Of a stretch of DNA of 64,000 nt, positions 4,860-49,300 are shown in pieces. The notes under the pieces were generated by a model. It was not told the DNA's origin. It searched no databases and saw nothing but the letters and a program-made list of their open reading frames with translations. The stretch is taken from NCBI GenBank assembly GCA_037447605.1, contig CM074813.1, positions 1,116,001-1,180,000 on the forward strand, written 5' to 3'. Positions within the stretch are counted from its first letter, which is position 1. Each line of letters starts with the position of its first letter. The position numbers and the translations under genes were made by a program. Source of the stretch: Zygnema circumcarinatum SAG 698-1b. Lineage: Eukaryota; Plantae; Zygnematophyceae.

Positions 4860-5934
4860 CTGTGCCTCTTCATCATCCCTTTGACAGTCTGCTTTGCCAG
4901 AGTGCTTTTTGGGTGACCTTTCGCTTCCTCCTTTACTCCTCCCCTCTACCAAGAAATGATCTACTTTCCCATCAGCCTCGCTACTTCCCAGAACTGCCAA
5001 TCCATCCAAGTACTTCATCCTTTCAACAAGTTCAGGATCTGAAGGATTAGGGTAGGGCATACCGACCACAATGACGCATCTTCCCATGCCGTCGCTGAAA
5101 TCAATACCTTCCGACATTTTTCCTCCCACTACACACAGCAGCAAAGCACAGCCTTTCTTCTTTGGCTTTCTGCCCATAAAGTCACCTACCCCAAATGTTC
5201 CAAGACCTGCAGAACTTCCCTGTTCTCCATTTCCTACTCCTTCAATTATCTCAGTTATTTTTGGCGATCCAGAAACTCTCTCATAGTGATCATGCAAGTT
5301 GCGATTTGCTTCACAGGCTCCACCCCCATCACCTCCATCGGCCCTTAACCCCTGGGAGCAACTTGCATCGACGGCGCAATCTGCTTCCACTACCTGATTC
5401 CCATCGTCTTCTGTGCTCTCACGATATTGCCGCAAAACCTCTTCCATGCCTGCGGTGCTGTGAGGTTCCCGATACACCACCTTTTTTGGTTTAATCGTGC
5501 GAAGAATCCCGACATTTTGCCATGTCTCCCAAACTTCTCTGTGGTAAGCAAACGAGGGAAAGAAGTATACAACGCCCTCGGGAACAACAGAACAGAGGTT
5601 GATAAGCAGCCGGCCGAGCTCTTGCACCTGAAGAAGCAAGTCATTGTAGAGGGGTTCCAATTTTTAGGGTTACAGCGGCATCAACAGGGGTTCCAAGAAA
5701 GCCAGAAGTGGCAACTGATGCTTGTAAGGCCCTGGGTACTCCGCGACTGAAAGCTGAAGTCAAAAGATTTTCCAGACAGTCCCCTGGCTAACGCAATTGG
5801 CAGCACAATATGGCCACAGGAGAACAAGTGCAGTTGGTTGAGAGGCAGGTGAGGGAAGAGAGTCTCTCTCAGGGTGGCCATAGGCTGCAGAGTGCCACCA
5901 GCCAGTACAACAGCTCTGGCTTCCTGAACAACCT
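4860..5934 (-). pseudogene. DDX11: DDX11/CHL1 (ChlR1) helicase C-terminal fragment
   Basis: Motifs VVLAGGTLQP...FSCGHIV, ELGRLLINLCSVVPEGVVYFFPSF and CVVGGKMSEGIDFSDGMGRCVIVVGMPYPNPSDPELVERM. The usual short segment after CGHIV is missing. The donor at about 5718 appears mutated (acaagc in place of gtaagc). Both the N-terminal helicase domain and the final NQSIGRAIRH exon are absent. Confidence 0.85.
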
Positions 5935-15691: not shown

Positions 15692-18600
15692 ATGGCGGAC
15701 CCCACGAGCAACGAGGGGCGAGCCTCTGTGCGTCAGCTGGCGGGCGTGTTCAACAAGCGCGAGTCCTCCGCCCCCGTTCCGAAAGCGGCAGAGAAGAAGT
15801 CGCAGCTACACGTGGATTGGCTCACGAAGGGAAACCTCGCCTCGCCTGCCAAGAAGCCAATCCCTCCAAGGCAGCCGCAGCCGCAGTCTCAGCCGCCCCT
15901 CGCCCCGTCTGATCAGGTGCGCAGATACCAAGTGATGTCTAGGGCTTCTGAAAGGCCTTTGCATTGGGTGAAGTTTAGTTGGGCCAGCGTAGTTCGAGTG
16001 CAAAGGGGAAGGTAAGTGAAAATTTTGGAACGAATAATCGTGTGCAGGTGGCAGGGCAGCTACGGAAGATGGAGGAACAATTGGAGCTGACGAAGAGGGA
16101 ATACCGTGAGCTGCGGCAGAAGCAGGCCGAGCAGCAGAAGGAGTTCTCTAAACTGGAGAACGAAAGGTTGGGGCTGGAAATGTCAAGAAGCAAAGTCGTG
16201 GCGCAGCTCGAGGTGGTTAGGAGGGAGACGGATGCCAAGATTCGGAGCCTGCAGGTGAGAGAGGCGATGGGAGAAGAGGCACGGGGGATCGCAGGGGTGG
16301 TGGTAAGCAGGGAGAGGGAGGAGGAGAGGAGAGGAGGGGAGAGGAGGGAAGGGGAGTGGAGGGGAGGGGAGGGATGGGGGAGAGGTAAGAGAGGAGGCAG
16401 GGAGGTGAGGGGTAAGGGAGGGCTAGAGGGACTGTGGGCTAGACATAGACAATGTGGGACATAGAGGCAGAAATTCGGAGCATCTCCGTTCATGCCATAG
16501 AAAAGAATTCCTTCAGGCCTTTAGTACTAAATCATAAGCGGTTTTACGTGCAGGAAGCGTTGGCGAATGCAGAAATTAAGGAGAAACAGGCGGTTTCAAA
16601 TGCGGAGGCTCTGAAAGCAGCACATGTGGATGCACTATCTTCCGCCCAAATGGCACATGAAAATTCCGTGAAGGAGATGTTGGTTTCCAAGGGCGTGAAT
16701 GAAAGAATCAGTTCTCTGCAAATGGAGGTGACGGCACTGGAAAGGGAGAAGACAATGCTTGCCACTGACATGGGACTTGCGATAAATCGTGGCAACGAGC
16801 TTGAGAGAGAGTTGTTGGTAAGCTAGCGTCCTGGTTTCTTGGCTTTTTTTTAACAACTCGGTGGGTTTGTCTTGTACCACTCGTTATATTTCGTTCCCTC
16901 TTCATCCCGCCTCACTTTCTTTCTCTCTTCCTCCAGTCAACCTTTACTAGGCCCTGATAGCTTTTTCTATCGTCTTTCCCGCTCTCACTTCCCATCCTCT
17001 TCCCTTTTTCTTCTCCTTTCTCTCCAACCTCTCGCCCCTGATTCTTATGTCCTGATCCCCTTTCTCTCACTCCCCTTTCCATCTCGCTTGACCTCTTTCT
17101 CGCCCACCTCTCTTCCCTTCAAAAAACGAAGTTTCAAGGAAACGTCCTTTCTCTCATCATCTCTTTGTCCTGTGCATGTGCAACCAGACTGCGAAAACGG
17201 AACTGGCTGAAAGACTGCAGGAGGTATCAGCTGAAAAAGTTAAAGTGAAGGAATTGGGGGAAAAGCTGAAAGCTGCAAGAAAAGCTGCTGATGCGGCAGA
17301 GCGAGAAGTGCAGGATCTCAAAACTGCAGTCACTAAAGCAGAGGCAGAACGAGATAATGCATTTGCTTCGAAGGAGGTGTGCTTAGCCGAGACTAGGACT
17401 GCAAGACATGAAGCAGAAGCTGCAAGAAAAGCTGCAGCCTCGGTAGTGGAGGAGCTTCAAAAAGCAAGAGATGAAGCGGATGAAGCTTCTGCAACCCTTG
17501 AAGAGCTGAAGAGAGAGATAGCAACCATCAAATCGTCAGCTTCGGTGGCAGCAGCGGCTGCAGCATTGGCAGCCACAACTTCTGCAGCCGAGATAGAGAA
17601 GGCGAGAGGGGAATTATCGGCTGCAAAACTCTATGCTTTAACGGCAGAAAGCAGAATTCAGGCTATGCAGAAGCAGGTGGAAGCGGCTACAGCTGCAGAG
17701 GCATTCTTCAAGGCACAGGCTGCAGACGCTGCAGCGGAAGCAAAAAGGCGAGAAGAGGCGTGCATGCTGCTTGAGCAGGAGGTGGAGAAAATGCAGGAGG
17801 AAGTTGTAGCGGCGCAGGAGAAAGCGGCGGAGGCGGAAGAATTAGCAGAAAGAAAAGGAAATGCTGCAACTGCAATGATCTCGGCAGCGAAATTGGCGGA
17901 AATTGAGAGTTTGAAGAAGTCGGAAGCAGCCATGGAGGAGGTTCTTGAAGTGAGGAAGGCGGAGGAAGTGGCGAAGAGGGCTTTGGGTGAAGCTCGTGCA
18001 GAGGAGCTCAAGCAGAGGGAGGCGACGGAGGCAGCCATGGCTGAGTTAGCGAAGGTGAAGGCAGAGTTGGAAGCTGCAAAACTGCAGACTGCCACTGCTG
18101 AAAGTCGGTATGAAGCGGCTCGGAGAGAGGGTGAGGCTGCGAAAGCAGCGGAGCTAATGGCGTTAAGTCAGGTGGCCGTGAAGGCAGTGAAGGAGGGAGA
18201 GGTGGTAGTGCAGCAGGAGGAGATGGAGGACCTGCAGAGGAGGCTGAGGGAGATGGAGGAGCTTGGAGAGAAGAGGGCGATGGCAGCCATGGCTCAGCTT
18301 GAGGCGGCAAAGGCGGTGGAGCAGGAGAGGCAGCAGAGTGCAACTGCAGCCATGGCTGAAACTCTCGCTGCGAGATTGGCAGAAGCAACTGCGAGGAAGG
18401 AGGCGGAAAGACTTGATGTGCAAATTGCGGAGAAGGACAGGGTGGGAGCGGAGATAGCAATGGAGCTCGCCTTAGTGAAGAAGGAGCTTGCGGCAGCCAT
18501 GGCGGCATCAGCGACTCTGGCGAGGAGACACGATAATGAGGAGGAGGCGGCAATGGCTGAGCTCGAGAAGATGAAGAGAGAGAGGGAGGAGAGAGAGGAG

Positions 18601-20436
18601 AGCTTCCGAAATATGGAGCAGGAGATGGAGGGGCTGAAATGCAAACTGGCAGAGGCAGAGGAACTTGCAGAGAAAAGAGTCGTGGCAGCCATGGCTCAGA
18701 CGGAGGCGGCGAAGGCATCGGAGCAGCACAGCCTTCAAAAGTTGGAAATTGCACTAAGAGAAGTGCGAGCCGCGAAGGAGGAGGCAGCCATGGCGACCAT
18801 CGCAGTAGAGAGGGCGGAGAAAAGGGTGGGAGAGGTGAGAAGTGAGCTGGAGAAAAAGGTGGCGGACTTTGAGAACGCGGAGGGGTTAACCTTGGCTGCT
18901 GCAGACCTGAGAAACGAGCAAATGGCAGTGGAGGGAGGAGAGGTTGATTTGAACGGAGAACGAGGAGAGGAGGGAGAGGAAGAGAGGGAACGGGCGGTAG
19001 CGTTGGAGAAGGTGACGATCATGGCGGCTGCGGCAAAGGCGGCGGAGGCTGAAGCGAAGGCGAAATTGAATGCCATGGAGGTAGAGGTGCAGGAGTTGAA
19101 AGATAAGCTGAAAGCCGCAGTGGACGAGGCAGAGAAGCTCCGGGTATGTGATGTCTTGAAGAATGGCGTTTTTTTGTTCTCACAATATTTTGAAATTTTG
19201 ACGTTTTCAAGTTATTTGGTGCAGGAAGAACCTGAAGGGTGTTTGCTGTGTGCGCCAATCTTGCAATGTCAATCAAAGCAGAGCACATATTGACATGATT
19301 GTTGGGATGTGGGGCGTAAACAGGCTGAGCTGAAGGATGCAGAAGCAGCCTTAGCGGCGGCTGAAAGCCGATATGTGGCAGCTCTTGCAGAGACCGAAGT
19401 CGCCAAAGTGGGAGAGAAAGTTGCTCTGCGTCAGGCAGCAGCGGGAGGAGGGGCTGGCAACGCAGCTGCATGGAAAAGGTCGACCACATTCGGAGGGTTT
19501 AATTCGTCAGTTTCGGCGAAAATTTCTGCAGATTCTCCAATGGAAGTAGAGACACTACGGAGGCAGCTGAAGGAAATGCAGGAGCTTGCAGGAATGAGGG
19601 TGGAGGCAGCACAGGCGGAGGTAGCAGCCGCTAAGGCAGCGGAGCAGGAGAGCTTGAAGAAGGCAGAGGCGGCCATGGCGGAGTTGGCGGCTGCACAGGA
19701 GGCAGAGGTGAGGGCAAAGTCGCTGGAGGAGAGGGAGAGGGAGCAGGAGGAGAGCATGGGAAGGAGGGCGGAAATTGCAGCTTCGGAAATTGCTATGGCG
19801 AAGGCGGAAGCGAAGGCGGCGAAAAGGGCTGAGGCAGATGCCCTATGGCAGCTGAATGCTTTGTTGGGGACAAAGGAAGTCTTGGAAGGAGAGCTCAAAA
19901 AATGGCGGGAAGAAGCAGTAGTGAGGAGGAGGACTGCTGAAGCAGTAGCAGCGAGGCAGGATGACGTGGACCGTTCTCTCCGTTTCCGGTTGGCGGCGGA
20001 GTCTATGCGCAGTTACAGTGCAGACATGTCATTTCCGAGCTCTCTGCCAAATTCGGGTCCCTTAGTGTACGGAGGGGAGTACAGGTTTGGGGGCAGTCAG
20101 TCCTTCAAAATGCGGCCGTCCAATCCAACGTCTCCAAAATTGTCTCCAAAAATGTCTCCAGCGGTGGCAAAATCCTCCCCGGAAAGAATCGATCTTGACT
20201 ATCCGCCGGTGTTTCCGGGGATGGAATTGGAATTGGATCCGGCTCTTCTTTCGGGAGTCGAGAGGGAGAGGAGGAGGGAGAGGAAGAGGGAGAAAGGGAA
20301 GGAGGCGGCGGCGGCGGCGGCGGCAGTGGCGGCGGCGGTGAAGAGGAGGAAGGAGAGGAAACAGGAAGGAGAGGACGAGGAGTTGATGGGTCCAATTGCG
20401 AAAGACATGCCGAAGTGTGGGTGCGTCATTCAGTAG
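15692..20436 (+). CDS. WEB-family (DUF827, WEB1/PMI2-like) giant coiled-coil protein, 1,254 aa, with C-terminal CaaX
   Basis: Exons 15692-15916, 16048-16254, 16554-16817, 17188-19143 and 19324-20436, all phase 0 and GT-AG. WEB motifs recur: AESRYEAARREGEAAKAAE, AEELAEKRVVAAMAQTEAAKASEQHSLQKLE and KEVLEGELKKWREE. The protein ends KCGCVIQ*. Confidence 0.85.
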
Positions 20437-22067: not shown

Positions 22068-23434
22068 TTGTAGTTGGATTGACTACAGGAACTTTTCTTT
22101 TGCGCGCGATGTGATTGGTGTGCCGCACATCGACGGTCGGCGCCCTGGGAGGGACGGCTTGAAGCGGTGTTTGAGCCTAGGGATAGCTTTGCGCTCCGAG
22201 CTTTTTTCTTCTGTCCCTAGGTCCTTTGCGACCAGTTGGTTCCTCGCGGATCCCCATGCTGATGTTGGCCACGCACATGTGATGGCATCATCGCCATGCG
22301 TGAGATCATTTCCAATTGCCACTTCCTCTTTCTTGTCGCAATACTGATCGCGAACTTTTCGTAACTTTTTGCTGAGTCGGACAACCCCTAGCCTCGTACT
22401 GGAGACGATTTAGGCAGCGCCTGTGTGTACGGACGATGGATCCTTTCGTGTACGGCCCGATCAGTCCGAGCGAGCGGCGCCCGACAACATCACGGCACAT
22501 CGCTGACGACGCTGGAGTCAGGTCGCGACATTTCCACCCTCTTGATAAACGACAATTTGCCGCCCTGTCCTCCCTGTCCGGAACCTTCCCCGGAGCTTTG
22601 AATGTGCGAACGCCGGTCCCGCTACCCGACAAGAAGCAATATTCGCTGAAATCATAACTGCCGTAAGGTCTCGCTCCGATTTTGTCCCATGGGATTGCGC
22701 CGCCGCCCTGAGGCGCCGCTGATTCGGCCCACGTAGGCATCTCGTTAATAAGCCAAAAAAGAAACCTTCGTGGAACTTTCCCTTGTTGCCCATTGTCAGT
22801 GCCGATCGCACGCCGCCCGCCCGCCAGCCCTAGGGCCTTTGATCGGCCACAAGGGTCGTGCTCGCTCCAGTTCCGGGGTGAGAAAGATCTGGCTCGGAAA
22901 TCGTTCGTACGACCTTGGATTGGACCCGACCACGTTTCGTACGGGCTTGAACCAATGAGAGCGGGCGAGGCGAACCAGATCTGGCTCGCGCAGCCGCGCG
23001 TCCCCGAGCCGAGTTTGGCCCGAGCCAAATCGTGCCAGGCGGTTTGTCGCCGTCCACCGGAGCAGGGCACGACATTCACTGACGTGGCACGAGGCAGGAT
23101 TTCCGTACTGGGAAAAATTACTTTTCCAGATTTCGTCAGATGTGGAAAAATTGCGGCAGGGAACCATGACGGTTGTCGATGCGGCGGATCGTGCGGCGGA
23201 GAGCCCGCCACCATCACGAGGGATGCGCGGAACCGCTACCCAACAAAGCGGCGGCCACGTGGCGCTGCGCCAGCTCACGCGAGTGACTTTATCGGAGGGG
23301 TCGCGGGGCCAGAGGGGGCCTCTTGTACGATCGACTGTCGGGTAGGGAATGCGTCATGTACGGAGGTGGCCGCGGCCGGGCGCGTTCGTACGGTCTGGCC
23401 GGCGGGGAGTGACGCCGCCTGGGAGTGAGGCAGG

Positions 23435-23627
23435 AGGGCGGGGGAGGAGAGGGAGAGAGGGAGAGGGAGAGGGAGGGAGAGGGACAGGGAGAGGGAGAGA
23501 GGGAGAGAGGGAGAGGGAGAGGGAGAGGGAGAGGGAGAGGGAGAGGGAGAGGGAGAGGGCGAGAGAGAGGGAGAGGGCGAGAGTTAGGGAGAGGGAGAGA
23601 GAGAGGGAGAGGAAGAGGGAGAGGGAA
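23435..23627. repeat. (GAGAGG)n purine tract immediately upstream of protease gene A
   Basis: Direct reading. Confidence 0.9.
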
Positions 23628-23774
23628 AGTAGTTTTTAAATCTATTTAAACCCATCGACGCATTTTTGTCCTCCATGCTCAGCATCAGCGGGAGTGCATC
23701 TTTCGCCTTTTGAGGTGAGGCAGGGCTAATATCCAATGAAACGACGCCGTTCATCCACGTGGCAAGCTGCCGCC

Positions 23775-26700
23775 ATGGCTTCTGCCGTCCTGCTGGCGCT
23801 CCTCCTCACTCTCTGTGTCACCGCCAGCGAAGGTTCGAGTCTTACTATTCTCTCTTTCTCTCAGGCGTTAATGCTACATATATACATTTTCTGCCATTTT
23901 CCCTATGCCAGCTGATAAAGACATGGAGAACGACATTTGTTTGCCCGGAAACCTCCCCCCTCTCTCTCTCTCTCCCTCCCTCTCTCTCTTTCCCCCTTTC
24001 CCTCGCCCCCACTCTCCCCCTCTTGGAGCTCATCTCCTCCTTCCCCATGTAGTTACAAAGTTCAAGCATCACTTGCGCACTTCATGCGGCTACAGCTTCT
24101 GATAACGGAACCAAATGTCTTTTTTTTCCGTAGCAAGTCTCAGTCTTTTTCATAAGAAATGCGGTCCATGCGGGTGGCTGTGCAGGCCGACTGACGATGG
24201 GCAGCAATATGAGCGCTGTGAGCAATGACGAGAGGGGATCTCATCACGCGCGAAGTGAAGTTGGTCGACGGTTGGACTCAAAAGTGAGGGCCACGTGTCA
24301 CACCCTGTGAAGCCATACATACACGTGCTGCTTGTGAAGCTGCTGCATACATGCATACATACGTACATACATACATACATAGGGCTATCGTGTTCAAAGC
24401 AAATGGAACGAATTCTAAAGCCATTTCTTGTAAACGTCGCTTATCGGCTGCCTCGTATGTGCGCAGATGGAGCCTGTGAAGATTGAACTTCCGTGGACTG
24501 CCACTAATGCGAGCTTGAGTCTGAAAGTGACTCAGCAAGGTACGACTCCTGCCGCAACTCCGCCGCTGCTATTTGTTTTTTCAAATGCATTCACAGCGCT
24601 AAAGGCTTGGCGGAAAGACATCGATAAAGTATTCCTTGCTCCTCCTCCGACAACCATTATTTCTAGGCCAAGCGCTATTGATTGCATTGCTCTCCTGTCA
24701 CTGCGAGTCATCAGCGTAGTTTGGACAGTAGAAATGCCTCCTGAAAGCAAGCCCCTCTCCCTCTCCCTCTCCCTCTCCCTCCTCTCCCTCCCTCTCCCTC
24801 CTCTCCCTCTCCTCTCCCTCCCTCTCCCTCTCCCTCTCCCTCTCCCTCCTCCCTCTCCCTCCCTCTCCCTCCCTCCCTCCCTCCCTCTCCCTCTCCCTCT
24901 CCCTCTCCCTCCCCCGCCCTTGGCGCGCGAGCAGGGTGCGGCCCGAGCTTCAGCGGCGCGCGGTGCCCCTCCGGGTTGTGCTGCTCGTCGGCCTCCTCGT
25001 GCGGGACCCAGGCGTGGGAGTGCTCGTACGGATGCCAGAACGCGTACGGAACCTGCGGTACGGCCGCATGCGCTGCTCGCATGCATGGGGGGGCAGCCAC
25101 GTATGTATGTGCAGGCCGCTTCATGCGACTCGTCTTGTTCAACACTTAGTTCCTGACTATGAAAAGTTCCTGACTATGAAAGTGTGCAACACTCGTTTTT
25201 TGTATGAAGAATGCAGCTGTCGCCTGCTCCTTTGTTCCAGCCTTCTTGAAACTGCAAGCGCCGCAGCAGGTCCTAAGTCAAAAGGCGCTCTCCTCTTTCT
25301 CTCTCTCTCTCTATCTCTCTTCTTCTCCATTGCTGAGTTTGTACGACCTCTCATCCCATACGCGTGGCTCGGCTGCAGCCTGCGGAGCCTCACTGTACCT
25401 GCCGTGCCAGAGCGGGTTCTGCTGTTCGGCCGCGGGCCAGTGCGGGACCGACTCGAGCTCCTGCAACAGCGGCTGCCAGGCGGCCTGGGGCACCTGCCGT
25501 GAGCCTCTTTGCTATGGGGGGAGAGAGGGAGAGAGGGAGAAAGAGAGAGAGCGAGGGAGAGAGAGAGAGAGAGGGAGAGAGAAGGATGTGGGAAGGGGGG
25601 CAAGGGAATGGGGGAGGAGGAAAGGGAAAGAGGGAAAGAGAGTGATGAGGAAGGAAGAGGGGGGCGGGAGGAGGAGAGGGAGTGAGATAGAGGTACAAGG
25701 GGTCCGAGGCAGAGCTGATACAAACCCTAGTCCTATCCGCCTTTTCATTTAGAAGCGCCGCACGTATTGTAGAAATAACCTGAACTCCGCACGCCGTTTT
25801 CCTTGACTAAGATCCTTTATCTCGGGTTTGCTGAAGCTTTCTGAAGCTGCAGTGGAGGCATGTGAGGCTCTGCACAATATTCATCATGGCAGAGTGCATA
25901 TGAGACTCTCTCTGTAGGTTTCTGACGGCATGCATCGCGAGGGGGGTGCAGGCTGCGGCCCTAATTTCGGCAATGCGGTGTGCGCCGCCGGCTACTGCTG
26001 CTCCAAAGACGGCTTCTGCGGCAACACTCGCGCGGCCTGCGGCGCCGGCTGCCAGGGAAGCTTCGGCGAATGTCGTACGTTTTTTTTTTCCCTTCATCTT
26101 GATTGTTCATTGTGGAGCATCAATTAGCTCTTAGCATATGCCAGGGGGCAATCCACTGTGACTTACGAGAAGCTGCAATTTGTAGTCTTTAAGTATGCTG
26201 TTCGAGTGAAGTATGCATGGACCATGTCATCATCATTCAAGCAAAGCAACCTAATCAGGCGGAGGATATTTCCCAACTGATGCTGGTGCTAGAGAAATAT
26301 ATGGAAAAAAGGTATCATGCCTAAAGCGAGGCATTGGCGCCTGCTGCAGGATGTGGGCCAAACTATGATGGCAATACATGCCCTTCTGGAAAATGCTGCT
26401 CAACAGACGGAACCTGCGGAACGAGCCTTGATGCTTGCGTATATCATTGCATGCAGGCCTATGGGGACTGTGGTATGTGCACACTTTCTGCATAGAGATG
26501 ATGCTCATGTCATGCATGCATAGCATGCGAATGATCTAGCCGGCATTCGAAAAGCTTCTGGATTGAGCACTAACACCAGCACACTGGAGAGAGTGGTAGT
26601 TTCTAGCAGGCAGGGTTGTTTCATGTACGCGTAGCGATGCTGAATGTCCAAAGTTAGTTCAAGTGTGAAGCGGGCTGTCAACGATAGTCCAGGTTAAACC

Positions 26701-29700
26701 TTAAGATAATCAGGTTCTAATTGAAGATTGTATTTTCAGTGCGCCTTTTCGTATTAAACTTCCATGTGGTTGCAGGGTGTGGATCGCAAAATTATCGTTC
26801 CTGTGATTCCGGCTACTGCTGCTCAGGAAGTGGGTTGTGCAAAACAGACAACTCCTCCTGCGGAGCCGCATGTCAGATACAGTACGGCACTTGTCGTAAG
26901 TCGTTCTTCTCACCCCTCTTCAGGGTTTCTTTCTTGAGTTTTTGGAGTTTTGAGTATTGTCTGAGACATTATGCACAAAAGAACGCGTTTTCATTACATT
27001 GACTTCTGAATCCATGGTTGCGTTCTGCAAGCGTGGTCTTAGAAATGGGAGGAGGAATGTTCCTTGTCAATAACTCAGCATGGTTTGCGCATTCTGCACC
27101 CTCTAAGCACCGCAAGCTTTTGACTTGGACATAAACCGTACCGATGTTGGAGGGCAGGATGCGGAAGAAACTTCAACAACGCGAAGTGCCCTTCCGGCTA
27201 TTGCTGCTCGAGCAGCGGCTACTGCGCGCAGGACAGCGTCTCCTGCGGGCTCACCTGCCAACCAGACTATGGCGAATGCCGTACGGTCTCCATCTCCCTT
27301 TCATGCATCACCCCTGCCTGCATCGAGAAGCTACTCCGCTTCCATTGTTGCCACCTTCATGTTTGCCTGATGGTCGTCCATGGGGGCGGGCCTGCCTGCA
27401 GGCTGCGGGCCAAGCTATGGCGGAGCGAGATGCCCCTCAGGCTTCTGCTGCAGCAATGAGGGGAAGTGCAGCGACAGTCTGTCTATATGCTCATCATCTC
27501 AGTGCACAAATTTATACGGCGACTGTCGTAAGTGCTTCAACGCATGCACATGTGCATGCGTTTACATGTGTGTTCGACTGAAAGCGTGGGCTGTTAGACG
27601 CCGACATTTTGCGTTCTCGAAAGTGATTCATTTGGGGGTGTTGCAGGGTGCGGCGAGGGATACTTCTGGCGGTCGTGCGAGAGCGGGTTCTGCTGCTCTG
27701 CAGACGCGTGGTGCAGAGCAGACAATACTTCTTGCTCCGCAGGATGCCAACCACGATTCGGCACTTGTCGTAAGCAGGCCGTATAATGCCATGCATCTGC
27801 ATCTGCATTCGATTGCGGGTTTGAGCTTTGGATACGTTGAGAAAGAGGAGTGGCTGAAGCAAAACCTGACATTGGCACGCAATGTGATGCTGCAGGATGT
27901 GGGAAAAATTTTGGTAATACCAAGTGCCCTTCTGGCTACTGCTGTTCAGCAGATGGCTATTGTGGCACAGACAGCTCTACTTGTGGGATTGGATGCCAAT
28001 CGGACTATGGCGATTGTCGTAAGCTCTTCAAAAGCCCAACTTCAAGAAATTGCTGTTATATGGGCATTGTGCTTGATAGCTTCAATTCCCTTGTGGTCCG
28101 TCTAGGGTACACTTCATAAAGGTGATCTTTGTTGGCCCTCTCTCTGTCCACTTCACTTCACAGGCTGTGGGCCGCTTTATGGCGGAGCAAAGTGCCCTTT
28201 AGGGTTGTGCTGTCAGCCATCGGACGGGTCCTGCAGCACTCTGCAGTGGGTGTGCGCATCATCCACCTGCCAACTGGCATATGGCACATGCGGTGCGTAG
28301 CGTTTTATTCACTACTGCTAACCACCTTCCTTTTCAAGAAAACGAAGCTCCTGCTCTTAGCCTTCCATACTGAAACTCACTCTATTGGCTTGGATCTTAA
28401 TTTGAAACGTGCTGGACCTATTGATATTCTTGATAGTTTCCTTCTCACTCCTGCTTGATGTTGCCGTATTCTGCTCTCCACTCTCCCCTTCAGGTTGCGG
28501 AGCAGCATACTATTCTCGTTCGTGTGATTCCGGCTCTTGCTGCTCTTCACAGGGCCTCTGCGGAACAGACAGCTTCTCGTGTGGCCAGGGATGCCAACGG
28601 AGCTATGGCAACTGTCGTAAGTAAAAAAAAAAAAAAATACAAAAATGTATTGATATTTGGTTTCTCGCCGCTCCCCTGCTCACTTAATGCAGGCCAACTC
28701 TCAACTCATGCACTTCTCCCACGTGCTTTCGTCGGCTAGGGCAGGTTTTACTTGTTGCGCTTGAGGATGCAGGTAGCTATGGATTTTGTTTCTTCGTGCA
28801 TGCTTTGAAATGTTCTGACCCACGTTCTTCAGGAGACCCGAAAGGACCTGAAATTTGTCTTTTCTTGGGATTGTGCAGGATGTGGGCCGAACTATGGCGG
28901 AGCTGTGTGCCCCACCGGCTACTGCTGCTCGCAAGATGGCTTCTGCGGGGCGGACAGCTCGTCCTGCGGAGCAGGATGCCGAGCGAGCTATGGAACTTGC
29001 CGTGAGCTACATGTTGCCCTGCCCTGCTGTGAATGTATTCAGTTCGGAAATACTTTGTTTGATTTCGCACTTTGTAGGCTGACTCCTCATTACTTTTCCT
29101 CCATACGCTCCCCACATTCCCTCTCTTGCTTGTCTCGTCGCCCCCTCACCCTTTCCTCCTTTCCTTACTTCCTTCACTCCCAGTTGGCTTGCTTTTTCTC
29201 TCCTCCTGCTCTCCCATTTTCTCCGTTCTCTACTCCCTCGTTTTCCGTTCCCCCTCCCTCTCGCTCCCTCCTCTTGCGTATCATTGCGAGTGGATCTATG
29301 AATACGGAAAAGTAGGTGCTTGAAGCCAGCAGCCTGCTGCTGATGCCGATACGTATTTTATGCATTACTAGAATGAGTTTCACACCTCCAGTACCAGTTC
29401 CGTGGTTTATTTTCCAATAAAAAGCAACTACGTGAAAGACCCCAATGACCATTATACATAAAAAGACATGGAGAAGAATCTGCTTGGACCCTCTTCAAAG
29501 AGCACTCATTAGAGGCCGCAAAATGGCTGAAGTCCGTTTTGCCAAGCTCCTATTCCATTATGTGCATACTCTTCTGTGGTCAATTGAAAACCGAAAAAGC
29601 CAAAAGAACATGGCTCCCTTTGAAATCTGTGTGCAGCTGAATGCTCCTGTAATCTTCACCTCATTTGCAAAAGCCATTTTCATATTGCTATTGCAAGATT

Positions 29701-32700
29701 GGTTGAAAACTGATGTGTTTAACCAACCACCCTTGCAGGCTGCGGGCCTGCCAATGGCGGGGTGACCTGCCAGTCCGGCTTTTGCTGCTCCCAGGGCGGA
29801 ACTTGCAGCACAGATTTCTCCGCCTGCAGCTCACTATGCCAACAGGGCTATGGCGACTGCGGTAAAACCCCGCTAGTTCAATGGGTCAACTTATGCGCTG
29901 CAAATTTACGACTGTCCTTCTGCCTCCACTCTCAGGGCCGTGGTCAAACAGTGTGACTTCAATTCCTAACCAATGGTTGGGCTCTTGTAGGATGTGGGCC
30001 TAGCTACAACTACGTGCAATGCGCCACCGGTTCTTGCTGTTCATGGAATGGCTGGTGTGGAACAAACAACACATACTGTGGGCCAGGTTGCCAAAGGGGC
30101 TACGGCGATTGTGGTGAGTGCATGTTTTCTAAGTTTGCTCTGACCACTTTCCGTCGATCACCATGGAGAAAAGGTTCAATCTGACTTATGGGTTTGGCTT
30201 AGCTTAAGGACACTACCGCAGGAGGAGAAGAAGTTCTTGGAGTGTAAGAAGGGTAAATGGCATTCTTGATAGATATCGAGATGGAATTACTCGGGATGAA
30301 CAAGCCCATTCGCTTACAAGTGACTAGTTGTGGACTTACGCTTGTAGGTGCAAATGCCCTCCCACCAAGTCCACAACCTCCACGCTCGCCACCCCCTCGG
30401 CCTCCCCCTCNNNNNNNNNNCCCCTCCGCTGTCCCCATCTCCTCCTCCCCCTTCACCTCCTCCGACCCCGTCTCCTCCCCCTCCTTCTCCTCCTCCACCA
30501 TCTCGTCCTCCTCCCTCTCCCGCTCCATTATCTCCATCCCCTCCGCCCCCATCCCCTCCTCCTCCCTCTCCCCCTCAACTACTTGCATCCCTACCGCCCC
30601 CTTCCCTTCCTGCTTCTCCCTTTCCTCCCTCTCCTCCACCACGCCCCCCCCCTCCTCGCTCTCCACGCCCTCCTCCTTCCCCCCCACGCTCCCCACCTCC
30701 TCCCCGTTCCCCTCCTCCTCTCCGGTCCCCTCCTCCTCCCCGTCCACCCCCACGCTCCCCTCCTCCTCTCCGTTCCCCCCCTCCTCTTCGTTTCCCCCCC
30801 CCTCCCCGTTCCCCCCCTCCTCTCCGTTTCCCCCCTCCTCCCCGTTTCCCTCCTCCTCCCCGCTTTCCTTCTCCTCCCCGTTCTCCTCCCCCACTGCCCC
30901 CGTCTCCTCCTCCTCCTTCCCCTCCTCCGCCTCCCCCCTCCTTCCCTCCTCCTCCTCCCCCTCCACCATCTCCTCCTCCTCCATCCCCTCCGCCTCCTTC
31001 TCCTCCCCCCCTCCCTCCACCGTCTCCACCTGCACCACCGCCACGTGGTATAGCCCTACCCCTTTTTGCATACACACATGCTGATCCTACCGTGCATGTT
31101 AGTGCTTCACCTGAAATTTCACGCTGGGAGCCACCCCTGGGTGAATCGTTTGTGGCTGGCCTCAATGTCTTCGATTTTTTTTACTGATTATGTGTAGAGT
31201 AGGATTCGTTCGGAACATGGCACTGCTAAAAAAACAAAAATCGGAGTCCACAAATCATGAGTGAAGACATGTTTTTCCGTTCCTACGCTCCTCGACTTTC
31301 TGAAGATGCCACTTATACTTCCAACCATTCCGCTCATACGGATTGGCCTGTGCAGACGATCGCAAGGGTGGATTAACAGTGGAACCAACTGTAAGAGTCC
31401 GATACATGAACACATACTTCCGGTACACAAGCTCGGGATTCATCAATTCGGATGACGTGACGCAGTCTTGGGTCGGTGCCAACTACTGGAATTGGGCAAA
31501 GCAGACTGGAGTGGTTCAACCGGTGAAGGACCAAGGAACATGCTGTGAGTGATGAACCTCACCTCGTCCATTTCAAAGAGTATGAGACTGATTTTCAAAA
31601 ACGCGTCAACTGATTGCTGATATTGTGCTCAGAGAAAAGAAGAGTCAAGGCAGTTTTCCACGTCTTCAAACTGTTCACGTCACGTTGAAGTCATATGGCT
31701 AATGGTGAATACATAGAATCTGTTTTAAGTCACGTGCTATGCTGGCTTCTGTGCAGTTACTTGCTGGATTTATGCCCCGGTCGGCGCAATCGAGAGCGCA
31801 TATTTTATCGCCAATGCTAAGCGCTTAAGCGTGACGAGCATTTCAGAGCAGCAAGTTCTGAACTGCAACAAGCTGAACCTCACGTGCATGAGTGGCGGCT
31901 GGCCAACGAACACCCTCAACCTTGCATCGACAAATGGGCTTCTCTTTTCGTCGGAATACAGTGTATCAAATGACTGTGACTCCCAGGTAAAATTTCTGCT
32001 TGAATCACCACTGTAGGTACATTATGCACTTGTTTTCTATTATGTGGCAGAAATGCTCTTTTGTTCGGAAGCATTGTATCATTGTGAAACATAAAGAAGG
32101 CCCCCCAAAAAAGTAACATTCCAACGCCCCTCGGCTAACTTTTCATAGAACCTCACTACAGTACTGGCAAAAGATTAGACTCCACTCCACCTTCGGATCC
32201 CATTTATTAATAATGTCACTTTATACAGTTTCATAAATACATTCTCTTCAGATGAAGAATCAGAATTTCTGCATTGAGTTACGCTCAATTGACTTGGATC
32301 ATATTGCTCTTCTATTATATTAGATACATTTTTCAATATTTCATTTGCACATTTCTGTTGCATGGTAACTTCACTATTTCACAGTCCGGTCACTGATGTG
32401 GAGATGAAACAGAAAGCCATCCTTGTATTGCGTGCAGGTGCCGAGCTCTGTGAGGATATCTGCATATGAACAGGTCAATGTGAACGATTGGGTGGGCCTC
32501 TGGTTGGCCCTTCAGCAGCAGCCGGTCATTGTGAACATCGAGGGAAGCAGTGACAGTTTTGTCAACTACAATGGCACGGTGCGTATGTAAGCTTCACTAC
32601 TGCAGTTTCTGCGGCAGTGACAGTACTCTTACGGTCTTCGGACTTCTGCTAAGTGTGTAGCTATTCTGACTGTCAAATGCTGGCGATATAGTTGAACTTA

Positions 32701-35679
32701 CTGTTGTGTTTTTAGAGTTTTGAGGGGTTATTGGGGATCTATGGCTGATGATGGCTGCTGTTATGAATAAACAAGTGGTGATCTCTCTAAATGGATCCTG
32801 GATGATTGCTGTTTGCAGTACATCTACGGCGATGAAGATTGCTTTTCCAACGGTATCGACCACAGCGTGCTCTTAGTCGGCTATGATTTGACCAATGCCA
32901 TCCCAAATTGGATCATCAGAAACTCGTGGGGTACGACTTGGGGGGATAAAGGATACATGAGAATGAAGATCACAACAGGAGATGGCATATGTGGAATAAA
33001 TACTCAGCCAGGCTTGATTCCCGTCTTTGCTTTTCCGAGTAAGTACGAGCAAACCTCAGCCTTCACATACGAGCATACTGCTGCATCCCGATGCTCTATA
33101 TCCCACATGACATTCTAATATTCTCTGTGTAATATTTAAGGTTTTGACTATTTGGTTGTAACTCAAGCAGTACATAGTAAGCCACCTTGAATTTAAAATG
33201 TATGCCTATCACACTTCTAGTGCAGTACTGTACGTGAACACGTGAAGTGAGGGGCTGGTGCCATAGCTTGAAAACGAAGTAATGCTGGAAAGAATCATCT
33301 CGTTTAGTCTAATCCAAAACTTCTCCACTATGCCAAAACTCATTCCCGACTGACTTTTGACATAAACACTAAAAAAACTGACTCTGACAGAGCATTCCTG
33401 ATGGTCTTTCTTGCAGGTGTCGACCCCTGCAATCGGAACAACTACGCTGTGGCGAACGGCAACTCTGACACAAGTCTCGGCTCCATGAACCCGTGCGGAG
33501 GGGGACGATGTGTTCCATCCGGCACGTCGTACCACTGCGAGTGCAGCAAACCAGTTTTTGTTCCTGTTCTCAACAGCGACAACACAGAAACTTGCGCTCC
33601 GGGTGGGTTTCCAATGAGCAACTGGGAGTAACTGAATGCTACAAGGCATGTTTGGTGGAATTTTGGAATGAAAGCTGAAGATATTCGATGGATCGTGAAA
33701 ATACTCAACATAAAGTGTTTTGTGAAGCAGCTTCTCCGTGCACCTTCTACACATCGAATCCCTGCGGGATTGGGACTTGCTTGAATTCGGACGGAGCAGT
33801 GGGTACATACACATGCATTTGCCCCCTTGGGTATGCTCTCGACCCGGCGGACAATAGCTCATGCCTCCCCGGTAAGTCTCTCTTAAACATCATGCGAAAG
33901 TTTTCCTAGCAGTGAGGGCTTCGCACAGGCAGGACTCCACGAAAGTGACAAACTGAAGCAGAAAGGTTTTAAATCAGCGTGAAAGCTTCATTCTATGATC
34001 CACTGTAACGTTTTATCTGTTGAAACTTCCATTACTCCCCGGCTTTTTCGAGTGGTTTCCAGGGTTGCTCCCATATTTGCATAACCTTTCTGTAGTCTGT
34101 ATCTATCATCAGAAATGCTCTCCAAAAACAGTCATTCTTGCAAGCTATATGTGACCGCAAATGAGCAGATACTGATGTGAATCTAGCGATGAGATGCGGG
34201 CGCAGCGGCTGCTCTCACGGGGCTGAAATCCTTCGTTGTCCCTCCGGGATACAACCTTTCCTGTTCCATCATTTATAATGTCTATGGCATCGACGCAGAC
34301 ACATTTGCCAGGCAGAACCCGGTAATTCTTCATCTCTCTTGAACATACTTTCTGCAGGTTGGCATTCGACAGATATCATGGAACTGTGGCCTGAAGACAA
34401 CTTCCCTTCCTGTGCAAGGACTGGGCCATGCGTTGGAGCTGCCGACCTCATTCGATGCTTCATTTCATGTCCTTTGAATAAGAAGATGATGTTGCTTGTA
34501 AAGTGTGACATTTCATGGATTCATGGGCTTGATATGTCGATTGGGTTTTTGGGCTTGCAGACAATTGACTGCACCCAGACGGTTCCTCCGTCGGTCGTCC
34601 TCAACATCACGAATTCGCAGAACTGTTCGCTGGTCTATGCGGCCGATGAGGTATGTGAAGGTTGCAATCACCGTTTCTCACCAACTACTTTTTATCAGTA
34701 ACTTGTAAACATGACGCCATCTTGCATGTTGCTACTGGATTCCTGAAATGAATGTCAAATTTCTGGACTTCGGGATTGTTCCTGCATGCAGGACGATAAC
34801 TGCACTGCAATTGAGGAGAAATTCAATCTTAACACGTCACTGGATGGGCCGGGCTCCCCGAATCCCGGACTGAACTGCTCTCTCATCGAGCCCTATCAGC
34901 AGGTCAGCTTCATACTGTAACTATTCCTTGTCTTCGCTTAACCCTAACAAAGAAGCACTGCACTGCAGACCAGCCTATGTGAGTTCAGTGGACCTGGGAT
35001 TTTGGATCTTGGAAGTAAACTTCAAAGTAGTAACCCTATTATCATTGCTGCTTGAATGGGTATACACTGCACACCTTACAGATATGCATCCAGAGAGGCG
35101 CCCTCCTGTACCTGGGGTCCTGCACGCTGTTCTATGTCGTCCAAGAGGGCGAGACCTGCTCCGACATCATAAGCGCGCGCTTGGGCGGCAACGCAACCCT
35201 GTTCTATCTGCTGAACCCCGGAATCTACTGCGGCCGCATCGAGTTCGATGTCTCCGCGAAGTCGTTTGGGCAGAAGGTGAGGGAGGGAGGGAGGGAGGGA
35301 GGGAGGAAGCCGACCTGAAGCTGGCGACTTAGGACATACATGATCTATATATATGCGTTTTTATTTCCTTTTCTCTTTATCCCTTTTGTTGTAGAGTTTA
35401 ACCACTGCAGCGTATTCGTTTTTCCCCCCTTTCTTTGTGAATTGTCCTTTATAGGTCTGCCTCGAGGCGGGCACCTTGGGAGGCGCCGTGGCGGGCTGCA
35501 AGGGACGAGGGCTGGCGATCGCGGCTAAGGACAGCTGCGCGAGTCTGAGCAAGTGCTTCACTAAGAGGGAGACCTTCAAGACGATGAACCGCACCCCCTG
35601 CACCTCCACGCTGCTCAAGAAGCTCCTCGGCGCGAGCAGGAGCCCTGTCATTTGCATTCCGAAAACGTCGCCTTGCTAG
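23775..35679 (+). CDS. Gene A: secreted signal peptide-14x hevein/CBM18-Pro-rich stalk-papain C1A protease-2x EGF-4x LysM-like protein (29 exons, about 1,500 aa)
   Basis: Signal exon 23775-23832 (MASAVLLALLLTLCVTASEG); leader exons 24186-24283 and 24467-24539. Hevein exons: 24935-25057, 25379-25498, 25952-26074, 26350-26472, 26776-26895, 27158-27280, 27402-27527, 27647-27769, 27896-28018, 28164-28292, 28494-28616, 28879-29001, 29739-29861, 29991-30113. Pro-rich exon 30348-31044 (contains an N gap). Papain exons 31356-31544, 31757-31986, 32438-32578 and 32819-33038 (KDQGTCFTCW, IDHSVLLVGY, IRNSWG). EGF exons 33417-33602 and 33731-33871. LysM exons 34206-34321, 34561-34650, 34792-34902, 35082-35276 and 35455-35679. 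All junctions are GT-AG and phase-compatible. The two leader exons are the least certain. Confidence 0.9.
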
Positions 35680-36467
35680 AGCAGGGATTAGGGCACCGCC
35701 CGTGGAGGGACACCAGATTTACTTGTCACTCATTCACATTGTGACCTTCCTTCCTCCTCCCTCGCATTGATTCATTGAGTTGTTACTTTCTGGCCCCTTT
35801 AGAGGGCTCCCCTCCTCTGCGGGCCATCATCAAAGGCTGGAGTTGCACTGAATAAATAAATAAATAAATATTGTGATGGAGGTGTCACTTGCTCACTTCC
35901 AGCAGGCGCATGACGGACGCATCCCTCAAACCCTAAACGTCCCTCAATCCCAGGGGTCATGTGCACGCAAGCAAAGACATCAACACGTTTCTCAAAACTC
36001 TGTCTTTATTTCGTCTAAGACCTTCATACATTTCACTGCATCCTTCTCGCTGTCTCTCTCTCTCTCTCTCTCTCTGTGCTGCTCAGCTCCATCTCTTCTC
36101 GAAATAAAATAAAAGTATCGAAATAAGTCCGACAACAACAACAGCAACAACAACAATAACAACAACATCAACATGCACGCAAGCGCCGAGGCCGACGTTT
36201 GCCGTCCTCGGCGCGGTCCCCTCGTGGTTTCTGTTGGGTCAGAGAGACTAAATTGGCCGCCCGGAGGCAAGGCTGGCTGACTGTACGGCAAGCGGCTGGC
36301 ATACAATTTGCGAAGTTGCGAGTCCGCTGCGCGACAGAACTGACACGTGGCAGGACGTACTTCGCCGATGGTCGGCCGCCACGTGACGTAATATGAACAG
36401 TTTTGAAACAATGACTTTCTGTCGTCATTTGTGACGTTTGCTTACGTCTGCAGAACACATGCGGACA

Positions 36468-46300: not shown

Positions 46301-49300
46301 TTCTCAAGCAAGCTCAATCCCCGAAGCTTGACTTGTTTCCAAATCACAATAAATGAGAAAATTCTTTGGTCCTTGTATGCAGGGATCTGAGCGATAACCT
46401 CCTCTTCGGCTCTGTTCTGATCCAAATAAATTCACTCATCACTCCCACTATCAATTTTGACTCCAACTATTTGTCCGGATCGCCATTGCTTACAGTCAAT
46501 GGCAACCAGCAATGCGGCAGCTTTTCAAGCAACTGCTTCACCTTTGCTGAGACATGGAACGCTGTTTGCGGCGCCAAGCCATCTCTCCGAGGAGACTGCG
46601 GCAGCTTCTGCAACGCTTCCCAGGCCATGGGGGCATGCGGCGGCCATGGCTTCTGCTCAGGGATCAATGGAGTCTGCACCTGCGATGCGGGATACTCTAA
46701 CCAAGACTCTCCATTCACTTGCATATTTGGTATGTCCCCCTCAAACAGAAATTCTTTACATGAAAATCCTGTCTGATTTTCGGAGACCTTCTTCTCACCT
46801 TTTCCAGACTTTTCCGCCATGAGCAGACCCTTCTTTCATATCTGTTTCCTTCCCCCACTTCCCAGTCCCCCCCCCCCCTTCCCTCCTTTTCCAACCCCAC
46901 ATCTTCATCATCTTCTTCATCTTCCCATCTTCTTCATCCTCTCATCTTCTTCATCCTCCCATCGTCTTCATCTTCCCATCGTCTTCATCTTCCCATCGTC
47001 TTCATCTTCCCATCTTCTTCATCTTCCCATCTTCTTCATCCTCCCATCTTCTTCATCTTCCCATCTTCTTCATCTTCCCATCTTCTTCATCCTCCCATCT
47101 TCTTCATCTTCCTTCCCATCTTCTTCATCTTCCCATCTTCTTCATCTTCTCTTCATCTTCTTCATCCTCCCATCTTCTTCATCTTCTTCATCTTCCCATC
47201 TTCTTCATCTTCCCATCTTCTTCATCTTCCCATCTTCTTCATCTTCCTTCTTCATCCTCCCATCTTCTTCATCTTCCCATCTTCTTCATCTTCCCATCTT
47301 CTTCATCTTCCCATCTTCTTCATCTTCCCATCTTCTTCATCTTCCCATCTTCTTCATCTTCCCATCTTCTTCATCTTCCCATCTTCTTCATCCTCCCATC
47401 TTCTTCATCTTCCCATCTTCTTCATCTTCCCATCTTCTTCATCCTCCCATCTTCTTCATCTTCCCATCTTCTTCATCTTCCCATCTTCTTCATCCTCCCA
47501 TCTTCTTCATCTTCCCATCTTCTTCATACTCCCATCTTCTTCATCTTCCCATCTTCTTCATCTTCCCATCTTCTTAATCCTCCCATCTTCTTCTTTTTTC
47601 CCCCCCTTTTTCCTTCCTCCCACTCGCAGAGGACCGCGGGCTGGGTCTGGAGGAGCCCTCCGCGCCGCGCCTCGCACGTGTGAACGCGTACTTCCGGTAC
47701 GCGAGCGCGGGGTACCTCGCGGGGGACGGCGGGGACTCCGCGTGGCTCGTGGCGACCAGGTGGTCCTGGGAGGGCCGCCGGGCGGTCCCCGCGGTCAGGG
47801 ACCAGGGGACCTGCAGTGAGGACCCGCCCGCCCGCCCGAAATTTCGTCAAGGCTTTTTTTTTTTTTTTCCTCAAAAAAAAGTTAAAAAAAAAGTCGAGAT
47901 GGAGAGTCATGCTTCTGTACAGCTCGGAAGATAGTTTAACGTTGATTGAATCTTTCACTGCTCTGTCGATTGGGCTCAATCTGTAATGGAATTTGAGCAG
48001 AGTGTTTTAGATGTGGGTTTGAAAGGCTATCATCACCGTCGAGAGAAACATCTTCACTGCAAGGATGTGTTTCTGTTCTTCGGACAAGGGAGAGGAGGTG
48101 GAAAGGAGGAGGGGAGGGAGGATGAAGTAGTGCAGAGACGTATGCATGCTAAACGTTGCTGCTCGTTGTGCTGTTCCCCTGTGGTGCATAGACACGTGCT
48201 GGGTATTCGGGCCCATATCCGCCATAGAGAGCGCGGCATACATCGGCGGAGGGGGCCTGCAGGCCGTGCCTGTGCTCGCGGAGCAGCAGGTCATCGACTG
48301 CTCCGCTCTCAGCACCGACTGCACATCAGGAGGCAATCCGTCGGACGCATTTGAATATGCGGAAAATTCGAACCTCATCCCCAACAGCTCCTATGCTGGC
48401 CCTTCAACATGCGCTGCAGGGCAGGTAATTGCATTGTGACAGTCAATCACATCTCTCTCTTTCTCACTCTCTCCCTCTCATTCACTTTCTCTTTCTCTTT
48501 CTCACTCCCGCTCTCTCGGTGCTTTTTTGTAACCAATCCTTTGCTGCTTTCGTTTTCAAGACCGTGTTGCTGTTTTATTGAATGAATCAAATTGAATCAG
48601 TTGCACTTGTTCGCTTGTTTAATGTAACTTTTTTGAATGCAGGCTGGGAGTAGCATACGCATATTGTCATATGAAAGAGTACAAATGAATGGCTGGCTGG
48701 GCCTGTTGTTGGCCCTCCAACAGCAGCCCGCAGTTGTCAGTATTGAAGCGAGCAGCGAGAGTTTCATCAATTACAACCCTCAGATGGTGAGTGTATGATC
48801 TCATGTTAAGATTACATTACATCCTGGTTCAGGGAAAGATCATCGCCAGGGACAGTTTCCGTTAAGTGATACGAATAATAAAAAGCAATTGAGCATGCAT
48901 GCATGTATGCATGCCTGCCTGCATGGGCATGCTGAATTCTAACTAGAGCATGGCCGTGCAGGGCACATATGAGGATGAGGACTGCTTCTCCAATGGAGTC
49001 GACCACGTGGTGGTAGTCGTCGGTTACGACTTAACATCCTCTCCGCCGTATTGGCTCATCCGAAATTCATGGGGTTCAGCCTGGGGAGAGGGCGGCTACA
49101 TGCGCATGAAGATAGCAGGGGGGGACGGGATCTGCGGAATCAATACCCAGCCTGCTCTAATTCCGAACATTCGGCCCAAAAGTAAGTCAAACCTAAAGCG
49201 TTTGTTGTGAATTATGTGACCTTAACAACGCTCTATGCAGGTAAGGCATCATGTATAGTGCTGGTTGCCCTCTCTCTAGAAGCAGTCGAAGCTTGAACCT

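Follow-up and report, generated by a model that had tools for sequence, protein, structure and literature searches.

Proteases of the papain type (C1A) joined to LysM domains have been recorded in green algae: the combination of Peptidase_C1 and LysM figures among the Chlamydomonas architectures that angiosperms have lost (PMC2728734), and a later survey catalogued Peptidase_C1 with two to three LysM copies and several partners in Chlamydomonas reinhardtii (PMC6362431, Table S3), with both sources reporting its loss from vascular plants. Both give architecture listings and no function. In the same Table S3, from a survey without zygnematophytes, hevein domains reach at most five copies per protein and occur with GH18/GH19, Barwin, RlpA-like, kinase, NodB, lysozyme-like and jacalin domains, never with a peptidase; a long array of the corresponding CBM18 module, the 11 units of BDEG_01757 in the fungus Batrachochytrium dendrobatidis, was in 2012 called the largest expansion known to its authors (PMC3569864). 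Here we analyse a gene, Gene A, in a 64,000-nucleotide stretch (the window) of the zygnematophyte Zygnema circumcarinatum SAG 698-1b (contig CM074813.1, positions 1,116,001–1,180,000). Gene A combines a novel hevein head with the body of an algal protease family that has been catalogued but whose function is unstudied, and on the basis of its sequence we favour, with a probability of roughly 0.6, a role of its product as an extracellular defence enzyme against chitin-walled parasites. An earlier reading of the same DNA (the original prediction) had stated that plant hevein proteins carry few domains and are fused to chitinase or Barwin domains and not to proteases, in agreement with Table S3 and its maximum of five copies.

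Gene structure and transcript

Gene A spans 23775–35679 on the plus strand (the strand of all its features below) of a window that is eukaryotic in sequence, has a G+C content of ~50% and contains four 10-N gaps. The product (1,494 known residues plus the gap, ~1,500) has the module order signal peptide, leader, hevein/CBM18 ×14, basic Pro rod, C1A protease, EGF ×2 and LysM ×4, and the gene model shows AG/GT splice sites and compatible phases throughout. The coding exons itemised here number 29 (1 + 2 + 14 + 1 + 4 + 2 + 5), against an overall count given as 30. Exon 1 (23775–23832; donor GT at 23833) holds the start codon and the signal peptide (19 residues plus 1 nt, ending in phase 1), the sole strongly hydrophobic 19-mer of the protein and signal-peptide-like; no transmembrane segment was found by hydrophobicity in the spliced product. 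Exons 2 (24186–24283, phase 1 to phase 0) and 3 (24467–24539, phase 0 to phase 1), both placed by AG/GT signals and frame, encode a leader of 57 residues that is Cys-free and has no Pfam match. Exon 2 contains the string VGRRLDSK, in which the original prediction had noted an RRL motif; the string is present but the motif is without support, as we know of no meaning of RRL in a green alga. A reading as RxLR was rejected, given that the string is RRLD and that the organism is a streptophyte alga and not an oomycete.

RNA contigs from four public runs of the same organism (X1–X4) were placed on 29900–35800. Gene A is expressed in the four runs, which come from two studies, and five public runs hold 49–58% of the sampled words of 31300–35700, as exons should. 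Joints in the RNA cover 13 introns, from hevein unit 13 to the last exon with its stop codon. Ten are seen as GT..AG joints in contigs: 30113|30348 (in three runs), 31544|31757, 31986|32438 and 32578|32819 (the last two in four runs each), 33038|33417, 33602|33731, 33871|34206, 34321|34561, 34650|34792 and 34902|35082. Joint 31047|31356 shows up as a skip, and the 40 letters between its two sides match the final 40 of the Pro-rich exon; 35276|35455 is derived from the arithmetic of a 1,248-nt X4 contig that spans the EGF exons to the 3′ untranslated region. For the joint between hevein units 13 and 14, contigs carry the end of unit 13 as a loose end before 29990; a 1,569-nt X1 contig reaches back from unit 14, its upstream part being unreadable. 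The 3′ untranslated region covers at least 35680–35800, with X2 and X4 contigs continuing past 35800.

The array and the protease are connected by an extensin-like, basic Pro-rich exon (30348–31047, phase 1 to phase 1, with RNA joints at both ends) that holds an assembly gap (30411–30420; a placeholder run of 10 N whose true length is unknown). Its known part encodes a rod of at least 228 residues, including 146 Pro, 34 Ser, 19 Arg and 20 SPPP+ motifs. No Tyr or Lys occurs in this known part, and thus no YxY/VYK cross-linking motif, which makes the rod extensin-like but not a cross-linking extensin. The gap could hide a stop, a frameshift or an assembly join, in which case array and protease would be made separately, an outcome that we consider highly unlikely. 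In its favour, no visible contig bridges 30411–30420, and with the 10 N taken literally the exon is 700 nt long and out of frame by one. We reject this frameshift as false, the N run being a placeholder: the known letters (63 + 627) total 690, or 3 × 230, so that any missing piece whose length is divisible by three would leave the frame intact; the codon split by the gap would be CCC (Pro), and between 30421 and a point past 31047 none of the three frames has a stop. The joints 30113|30348 and 31047|31356 fix the frame on both sides of the gap, and the frame after it is independently set by the RNA-verified donor at 31047, from which the protease exon must be entered in phase 1. In X2–X4, RNA is spliced from hevein unit 14 into the Pro-rich exon and from there on to the protease, at similar depth, and a 1,172-nt X3 contig is arithmetically collinear from 30529 through 31047 to protease exons 1–2, with the joint to exon 3. 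An X2 contig extends 20 letters into the gap, all of them C or T and, in frame, poly-Pro; a stop is unlikely in such a tract. Continuity across the gap is very likely, short of proof. The stop in this exon that the original prediction had named as fatal to its reading is found in no frame of the known letters, with RNA spliced into the protease exons, and its claim of one secreted protein holds for the architecture and the single transcript, the unread gap excepted. Gene A thus appears to be one transcribed gene, encoding what is probably a secreted, non-membrane glycoprotein.

Several contigs match the Pro-rich exon in part and then diverge into unrelated sequence (at 30555, 30618, 30685 and 30838), one of them beginning with a leader that contains an ATG. 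The Pro-rich repeat is probably common to other extensin-like genes, which makes assemblies here unreliable.

Hevein, protease, EGF and LysM modules

Regular-expression and tblastn searches of the whole window found exactly 14 hevein units, between 24937 and 30112 on the plus strand, with 14 tblastn matches at E ~1e-21 to 1e-25 and everything else in the window at E > 0.03. Each unit is an exon of its own (120–129 nt, AG before and GT after), and all are in phase 1, with 2 nt of a split codon at the start and 1 nt at the end. All 14 units keep the eight Cys and two Gly without exception and follow the pattern C-x8-C-x4-CC-x5-C-x6-C-x3-C-x(n)-C, with small indels in units 2, 5, 7 and 10. Search, phases and cysteines thus bear out the 14 symmetric phase-1 exons of the original prediction. 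Pfam PF00187 (Chitin_bind_1) is the only match of all 14 units (16.4–37.6 bits; E 2.6e-9 to 0.011); units 3, 6, 9, 12 and 14 singly exceed its gathering cutoff of 27.8 bits, the other nine falling below. A PDB search with a profile of the 14 units returned only hevein-type chains (pokeweed lectin-C at 1.3e-16, Arundo lectin, WGA, hevein and Ac-AMP2). The AlphaFold (AF2) model of the divergent unit 1 has a predicted local distance difference test score (pLDDT) of 92 and superimposes on pokeweed lectin-C, the rice chitinase CBM18 and WGA with template-modelling (TM) scores of 0.72–0.77 and root-mean-square deviations of 1.1–1.5 Å (0.77 and 1.5 Å for pokeweed lectin-C), and on hevein 1hev with 2.1 Å; 31 of its 32 structural matches are hevein-type.

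The array has a period of three, identity being ~55% at lags 3 and 6 versus ~46% at other lags, and the third unit of each A-B-C triplet is the canonical one, with Pfam scores in the same rhythm (3, 6, 9 and 12; also 14). Class A comprises units 1 (24935–25057; 22.7 bits against PF00187), 4 (26350–26472; 24.6 bits), 7 (27402–27527; 19.9 bits), 10 (28164–28292; 17.2 bits, with CCQ for CCS and two insertions) and 13 (29739–29861; 18.0 bits). Class B comprises units 2 (25379–25498; 20.9 bits), 5 (26776–26895; 19.5 bits), 8 (27647–27769; 16.4 bits, the weakest, with Trp at the position of hevein Trp23) and 11 (28494–28616; 24.2 bits). The class C units are 3 (25952–26074; 37.5 bits), 6 (27158–27280; 28.3 bits), 9 (27896–28018; 37.6 bits) and 12 (28879–29001; 34.8 bits), which carry Phe, Tyr, Tyr and Phe, respectively, at the Trp23 position, and unit 14 (29991–30113; 34.3 bits) has Trp there and Tyr at the Tyr30 position.

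Between Cys8 of a unit and Cys1 of its successor stands one residue, which at 9 of the 13 junctions is Arg and at the others Gly or Ala. Hevein-like peptides are known plant antimicrobials, and the recurrent single Arg would suit a polyprotein precursor cut into 14 such peptides, perhaps by the attached protease. We give this possibility next to no weight, because single-residue linkers leave no accessible linker; the same spacing of one residue is found in uncleaved lectins such as WGA.

The intron between units 12 and 13 (29002–29738) is, at 737 nt, two to three times as long as the other array introns, and tblastn recognised no decayed hevein unit in it. Long simple repeats of the GA/CT type (23429–23646, 24745–24920 and 25500–25700) lie just upstream of Gene A, directly before hevein exon 1 and in the intron after unit 2.

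Downstream of the rod, four exons encode the protease. Exon 1 (31356–31544; no Pfam match) comprises a short pre-domain segment and the oxyanion Gln (VKDQGTC), exon 2 (31757–31986) the catalytic Cys (TCW; PF00112, E 6.5e-9, 36.6 bits), exon 3 (32438–32578) a stretch collinear with P0007, a homologous protein from a Logan transcript, and exon 4 (32819–33038) the catalytic His (DHS) and Asn (NSWG; PF00112, E 6.1e-18, 66.1 bits); the PF00112 cutoff is 20.7 bits, and exons 1–3 are bounded by RNA joints. Alignment with cathepsin F, actinidin and cruzain matches Cys25, His159 and Asn175 to their catalytic counterparts, Gln19 is read directly in VKDQGTC, and the seven Cys fit a catalytic Cys plus three papain-type disulfides. 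The catalytic residues are intact and the protease is apparently active. Pfam and these alignments confirm the Gln/Cys/His/Asn protease that the original prediction had placed between the hevein and LysM classes. Two EGF-like exons follow, both in phase 1-1 and joined by RNA (33417–33602, 25.3 bits; 33731–33871, 27.7 bits); both pass the PF00008 cutoff of 21.5 bits and they hold 12 Cys between them. These two exons, like the variable-head family and the sister copy described below, were absent from what the original prediction claimed for Gene A.

RNA depth in X1 is 300–950 over protease exons 3–4 and the EGF exons (32461–33839), versus 53–98 over hevein unit 14 and 0 over the LysM exons, whereas in X2–X4 it is even (20–90); library bias, contig filtering or a shorter transcript could explain the uneven depth. 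Unspliced contigs (33011–33446 and 33842–34234) cross the introns 33039–33416 and 33872–34205 at ~1/10 to 1/3 of the spliced depth and may reflect pre-mRNA, retained introns or carried-over DNA. At 32211–32243, inside an intron, an X1 contig departs from the window sequence over 35 nt, with four substitutions and an insertion of 9 nt; the difference is probably allelic or between strains.

The LysM region comprises five exons: a (34206–34321, after joint 33871|34206), first half of unit 1; b (34561–34650, RNA joints, collinear with P0007), the end of unit 1 and the start of unit 2; c (34792–34902, RNA joints), unit 2; d (35082–35276), unit 3; and e (35455–35679), unit 4 and the stop codon TAG, with no Pfam match by itself. 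An additional exon within 34322–34560, where in-frame AG..GT candidates were enumerated, was rejected because RNA joins 34321 straight to 34561. Unit 3, the sole unit within one exon, matches PF01476 with E 0.0026 and 18.1 bits against a cutoff of 20.9, the match being clipped by the exon end; introns interrupt units 1 and 2, and the scan covered single exons. Exon d aligns with the Pfam-positive LysM of P0007 and of P0102 from Mesotaenium, and its Atlas neighbours are LysM clusters. The whole region is collinear with P0007 to the C terminus at 45% identity, and both P0007 (38 bits) and P0102 (69.6 bits, three stretches) pass Pfam LysM. A model of P0007:230–494, that is, of the homologue and not of Gene A, has pLDDT 72 and shows four beta-alpha-alpha-beta units, the fourth, to which exon e corresponds, with low confidence; its PDB matches are Ecp6, SleL, NlpC/P60 LysM, CEBiP, LYR4 and a fern chitinase LysM, with TM scores of up to 0.86 (target-normalised). 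Four LysM units are thus well supported by model for the family and, because the region is collinear with P0007, for Gene A, as the original prediction had proposed. That prediction had also staked its reading on Pfam assigning both binding classes: Chitin_bind_1 is assigned to 14 of the 14 units, and LysM stays below the cutoff in unit 3.

Family, sister copy and proposed function

The protease-EGF-LysM body is the constant part of a large uncharacterised zygnematophyte family whose N-terminal heads vary. In phmmer searches with Gene A segments, dozens of proteins keep the order protease, EGF, LysM; they come from Closterium spp. (NIES-53, -54, -64, -65, -67, -68, Naga37s-1 and Yama58-4), Mesotaenium endlicherianum and the EukProt and Logan transcriptomes, all of them unnamed or hypothetical; a search with P0007 returned only three proteins. 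Heads of the relatives are leucine-rich repeats (LRR), a legume lectin or both. Hevein (PF00187) was found in none of ~250 of these proteins (150 representatives by regular expression and phmmer, 88 family matches and 17 more), in a search for hevein with C1A that ran from the protease side and not from the hevein side. Gene A's own protein was not in the databases, the best identity to protease exon 4 in the representative search being 68%.

About 12 kb downstream, a sister body (Gene B; 47629–51801, plus strand) has the same protease-EGF-EGF-LysM content and the same 4 + 2 + 5 exon layout, its identity to Gene A being 74% for protease exon 4 and ~50% across the LysM exons. A quick maximum-likelihood tree with long branches joins Gene A and Gene B as sisters (SH-aLRT 99) and places the pair inside a clade of LRR- or lectin-headed transcriptome proteins, apart from large Closterium clades. 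The head of Gene B we take, on an unchecked reading, to be extensin-LRR-EGF. The simplest history would be that the body was duplicated locally and the head then replaced, a swap made easy by head, rod and EGF exons that are all in phase 1-1; the hevein head may have arisen by duplication of phase-1 exons in groups of three and joined the duplicated body by exon shuffling.

In the defence role that we favour, in part because algae of this kind have parasites, the protein would be secreted into the wall or mucilage, where the hevein array and the basic, Tyr-free extensin-like rod would form a long spacer and the Arg-rich rod may retain the protein in the acidic, pectin-based matrix. Polymers of N-acetylglucosamine (GlcNAc) would be bound by the four LysM units together with some five canonical hevein units, candidate ligands being chitin from parasites (chytrids or other fungi) and possibly peptidoglycan of bacteria. 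The papain-type protease would thereby be concentrated on the bound surface, where it would cut surface or secreted proteins, making Gene A's product an extracellular defence, or possibly feeding, enzyme.

Several observations weigh against this role or against the model beneath it. The sugar-contact set (Ser19, Trp21, Trp23 and Tyr30, hevein numbering) is complete in no unit: position 19 is Ser in 13/14 units, and aromatic residues occupy the Trp21 position in 0/14, the Trp23 position in 6/14 (units 3, 6, 8, 9, 12 and 14) and the Tyr30 position in 1/14 (unit 14). With the aromatic contact residues mostly missing, perhaps 5–6 units are competent and not 14, and the array may bind weakly, bind another target or be partly structural. 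An I29 prodomain (ERFNIN type) is absent, with no Pfam match on the exon before the mature domain, which leaves folding and latency of the protease unexplained. Besides the unbridged gap, exons 1–3 and hevein joints 1–12 are placed by splice signals only, and in the Pfam and AlphaFold work single exons and the 45%-identical P0007 stood in for the spliced protein. Of the very-high-avidity protease for chitin or fungal walls in the original prediction, chitin targeting is plausible and 'very high avidity' doubtful, because only units 3, 6, 9, 12 and 14 look canonical.

The same residues bear on an endogenous role, in which the enzyme would act on the alga's own wall or mucilage glycoproteins (wall remodelling, adhesion or conjugation) and the degenerate hevein units would be a rigid, disulfide-rich stalk or binders of the alga's own N-glycans. 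That 9 of the 14 units fall under the Pfam cutoff and have no aromatics would fit this role, as would a rod typical of wall proteins and expression in four runs of two studies with no sign that infection is needed. However, the eight Cys and the Ser have been kept under constraint, five units are canonical and a second GlcNAc-binding class, the four LysM units, is attached; in addition, chitin is, to our knowledge, not known in zygnematophyte walls. We therefore regard an endogenous role as unlikely.

The missing prodomain would be accommodated if the product were a sensor, with binding of chitin or peptidoglycan fragments switching on or relocating the protease, which would release a signal or activate another protein; pattern-recognition modules would then be wired to a protease instead of a kinase. 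Activity without a prodomain needs some other control, and the family's heads (LRR, legume lectin) and LysM are receptor-type modules of land-plant immunity. PF08246 was in no family match, yet was present in insect cathepsins of the same search, and only ~45 residues lie between the rod and the protease domain of Gene A. On the other side, there is no transmembrane segment and no known signalling partner, nothing in the sequence points to ligand-gated activity, and 14 tandem lectin units resemble a device for avidity or adhesion more than a sensor. We thus judge a sensor improbable. At the level of the family, we put forward as a doubtful possibility that the algae closest to land plants have an extracellular 'recognise-and-cut' immunity, in which LysM, LRR and lectin modules sit on a prodomain-less papain protease and not, as in land plants, on kinases. 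New specificities may then come from head swaps on a duplicated body, and Gene A may be the chitin-specialised member.

Plant defence has two classic binders of GlcNAc polymers, hevein and LysM, and in Gene A, from an alga whose lineage is sister to land plants, an apparently active protease has one of them on either side. Should chitin-bearing parasites indeed be the target, a lectin-guided protease would be a defence design not kept by vascular plants. Gene A and Gene B, with the same body and apparently different heads, would then also form a natural experiment in module swapping, and the A-B-C repeat with its canonical C units lets one ask how many units of an array must bind. The value of the find is tempered by the family's presence in public proteomes.

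Upstream of Gene A, the window contains an exon of a Helicase_C_2-type helicase (4818–5663, minus strand) and a long coiled-coil open reading frame with a weak WEMBL-like match (17092–20433, plus strand), neither with an evident link to Gene A.

Comparison with known systems

Closest to Gene A are the zygnematophyte head-C1A-EGF-LysM proteins (GJP59109.1/P0130 of Closterium sp. NIES-67, CAI5959345.1/P0019 of Closterium, ME000166S01720/P0102 of Mesotaenium endlicherianum and P0007), which share its module order and C-terminal motif and, like it, have no I29 prodomain; their heads are LRR or legume lectin, in contrast to the hevein head of Gene A. We found no literature on this family beyond domain-architecture listings. 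Chlamydomonas reinhardtii, compared by architecture only, resembles Gene A as a green alga with a C1A protease followed by several LysM units, whereas its partner domains are galactose-binding-like, SRCR and C-type lectin, none of them hevein.

The 14-unit array exceeds the largest that we found described, the 11 CBM18 copies once called the largest (PMC3569864). BDEG_01757 has, like Gene A, a long homogeneous CBM18 array from tandem duplication; unlike Gene A, it is without a catalytic domain, and its proposed target is chitin of the fungus itself (PMC3569864). Atlas neighbours of one Gene A hevein unit are chytrid and ascomycete CBM18 clusters, a lead only, with scores <0.9. Closest to the units in sequence and fold are the multi-hevein lectins, namely WGA (4 units), pokeweed lectin-C (3 units, 1ulk) and the Arundo donax lectin, which likewise have tandem eight-Cys hevein units with very short linkers. 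These lectins have 2–4 units, a full Ser/aromatic site and no enzyme, whereas in Gene A the units number 14, mostly lack the aromatics and are fused to a protease.

Among land-plant proteases, RD21 and those of the Rcr3/Pip1 type are extracellular C1A enzymes with roles in immunity, and RD21 has a Cys-rich C-terminal granulin module; in contrast to Gene A, they have an I29 prodomain and no lectin modules. The best structural matches of the family's LysM block are Ecp6 (4b8v), CEBiP (5jce) and CERK1-type ectodomains, with which it shares a Cys-linked packing of multiple LysM units. Those proteins combine three LysM units with nothing else, a glycosylphosphatidylinositol anchor or a kinase, whereas Gene A combines four with a protease.

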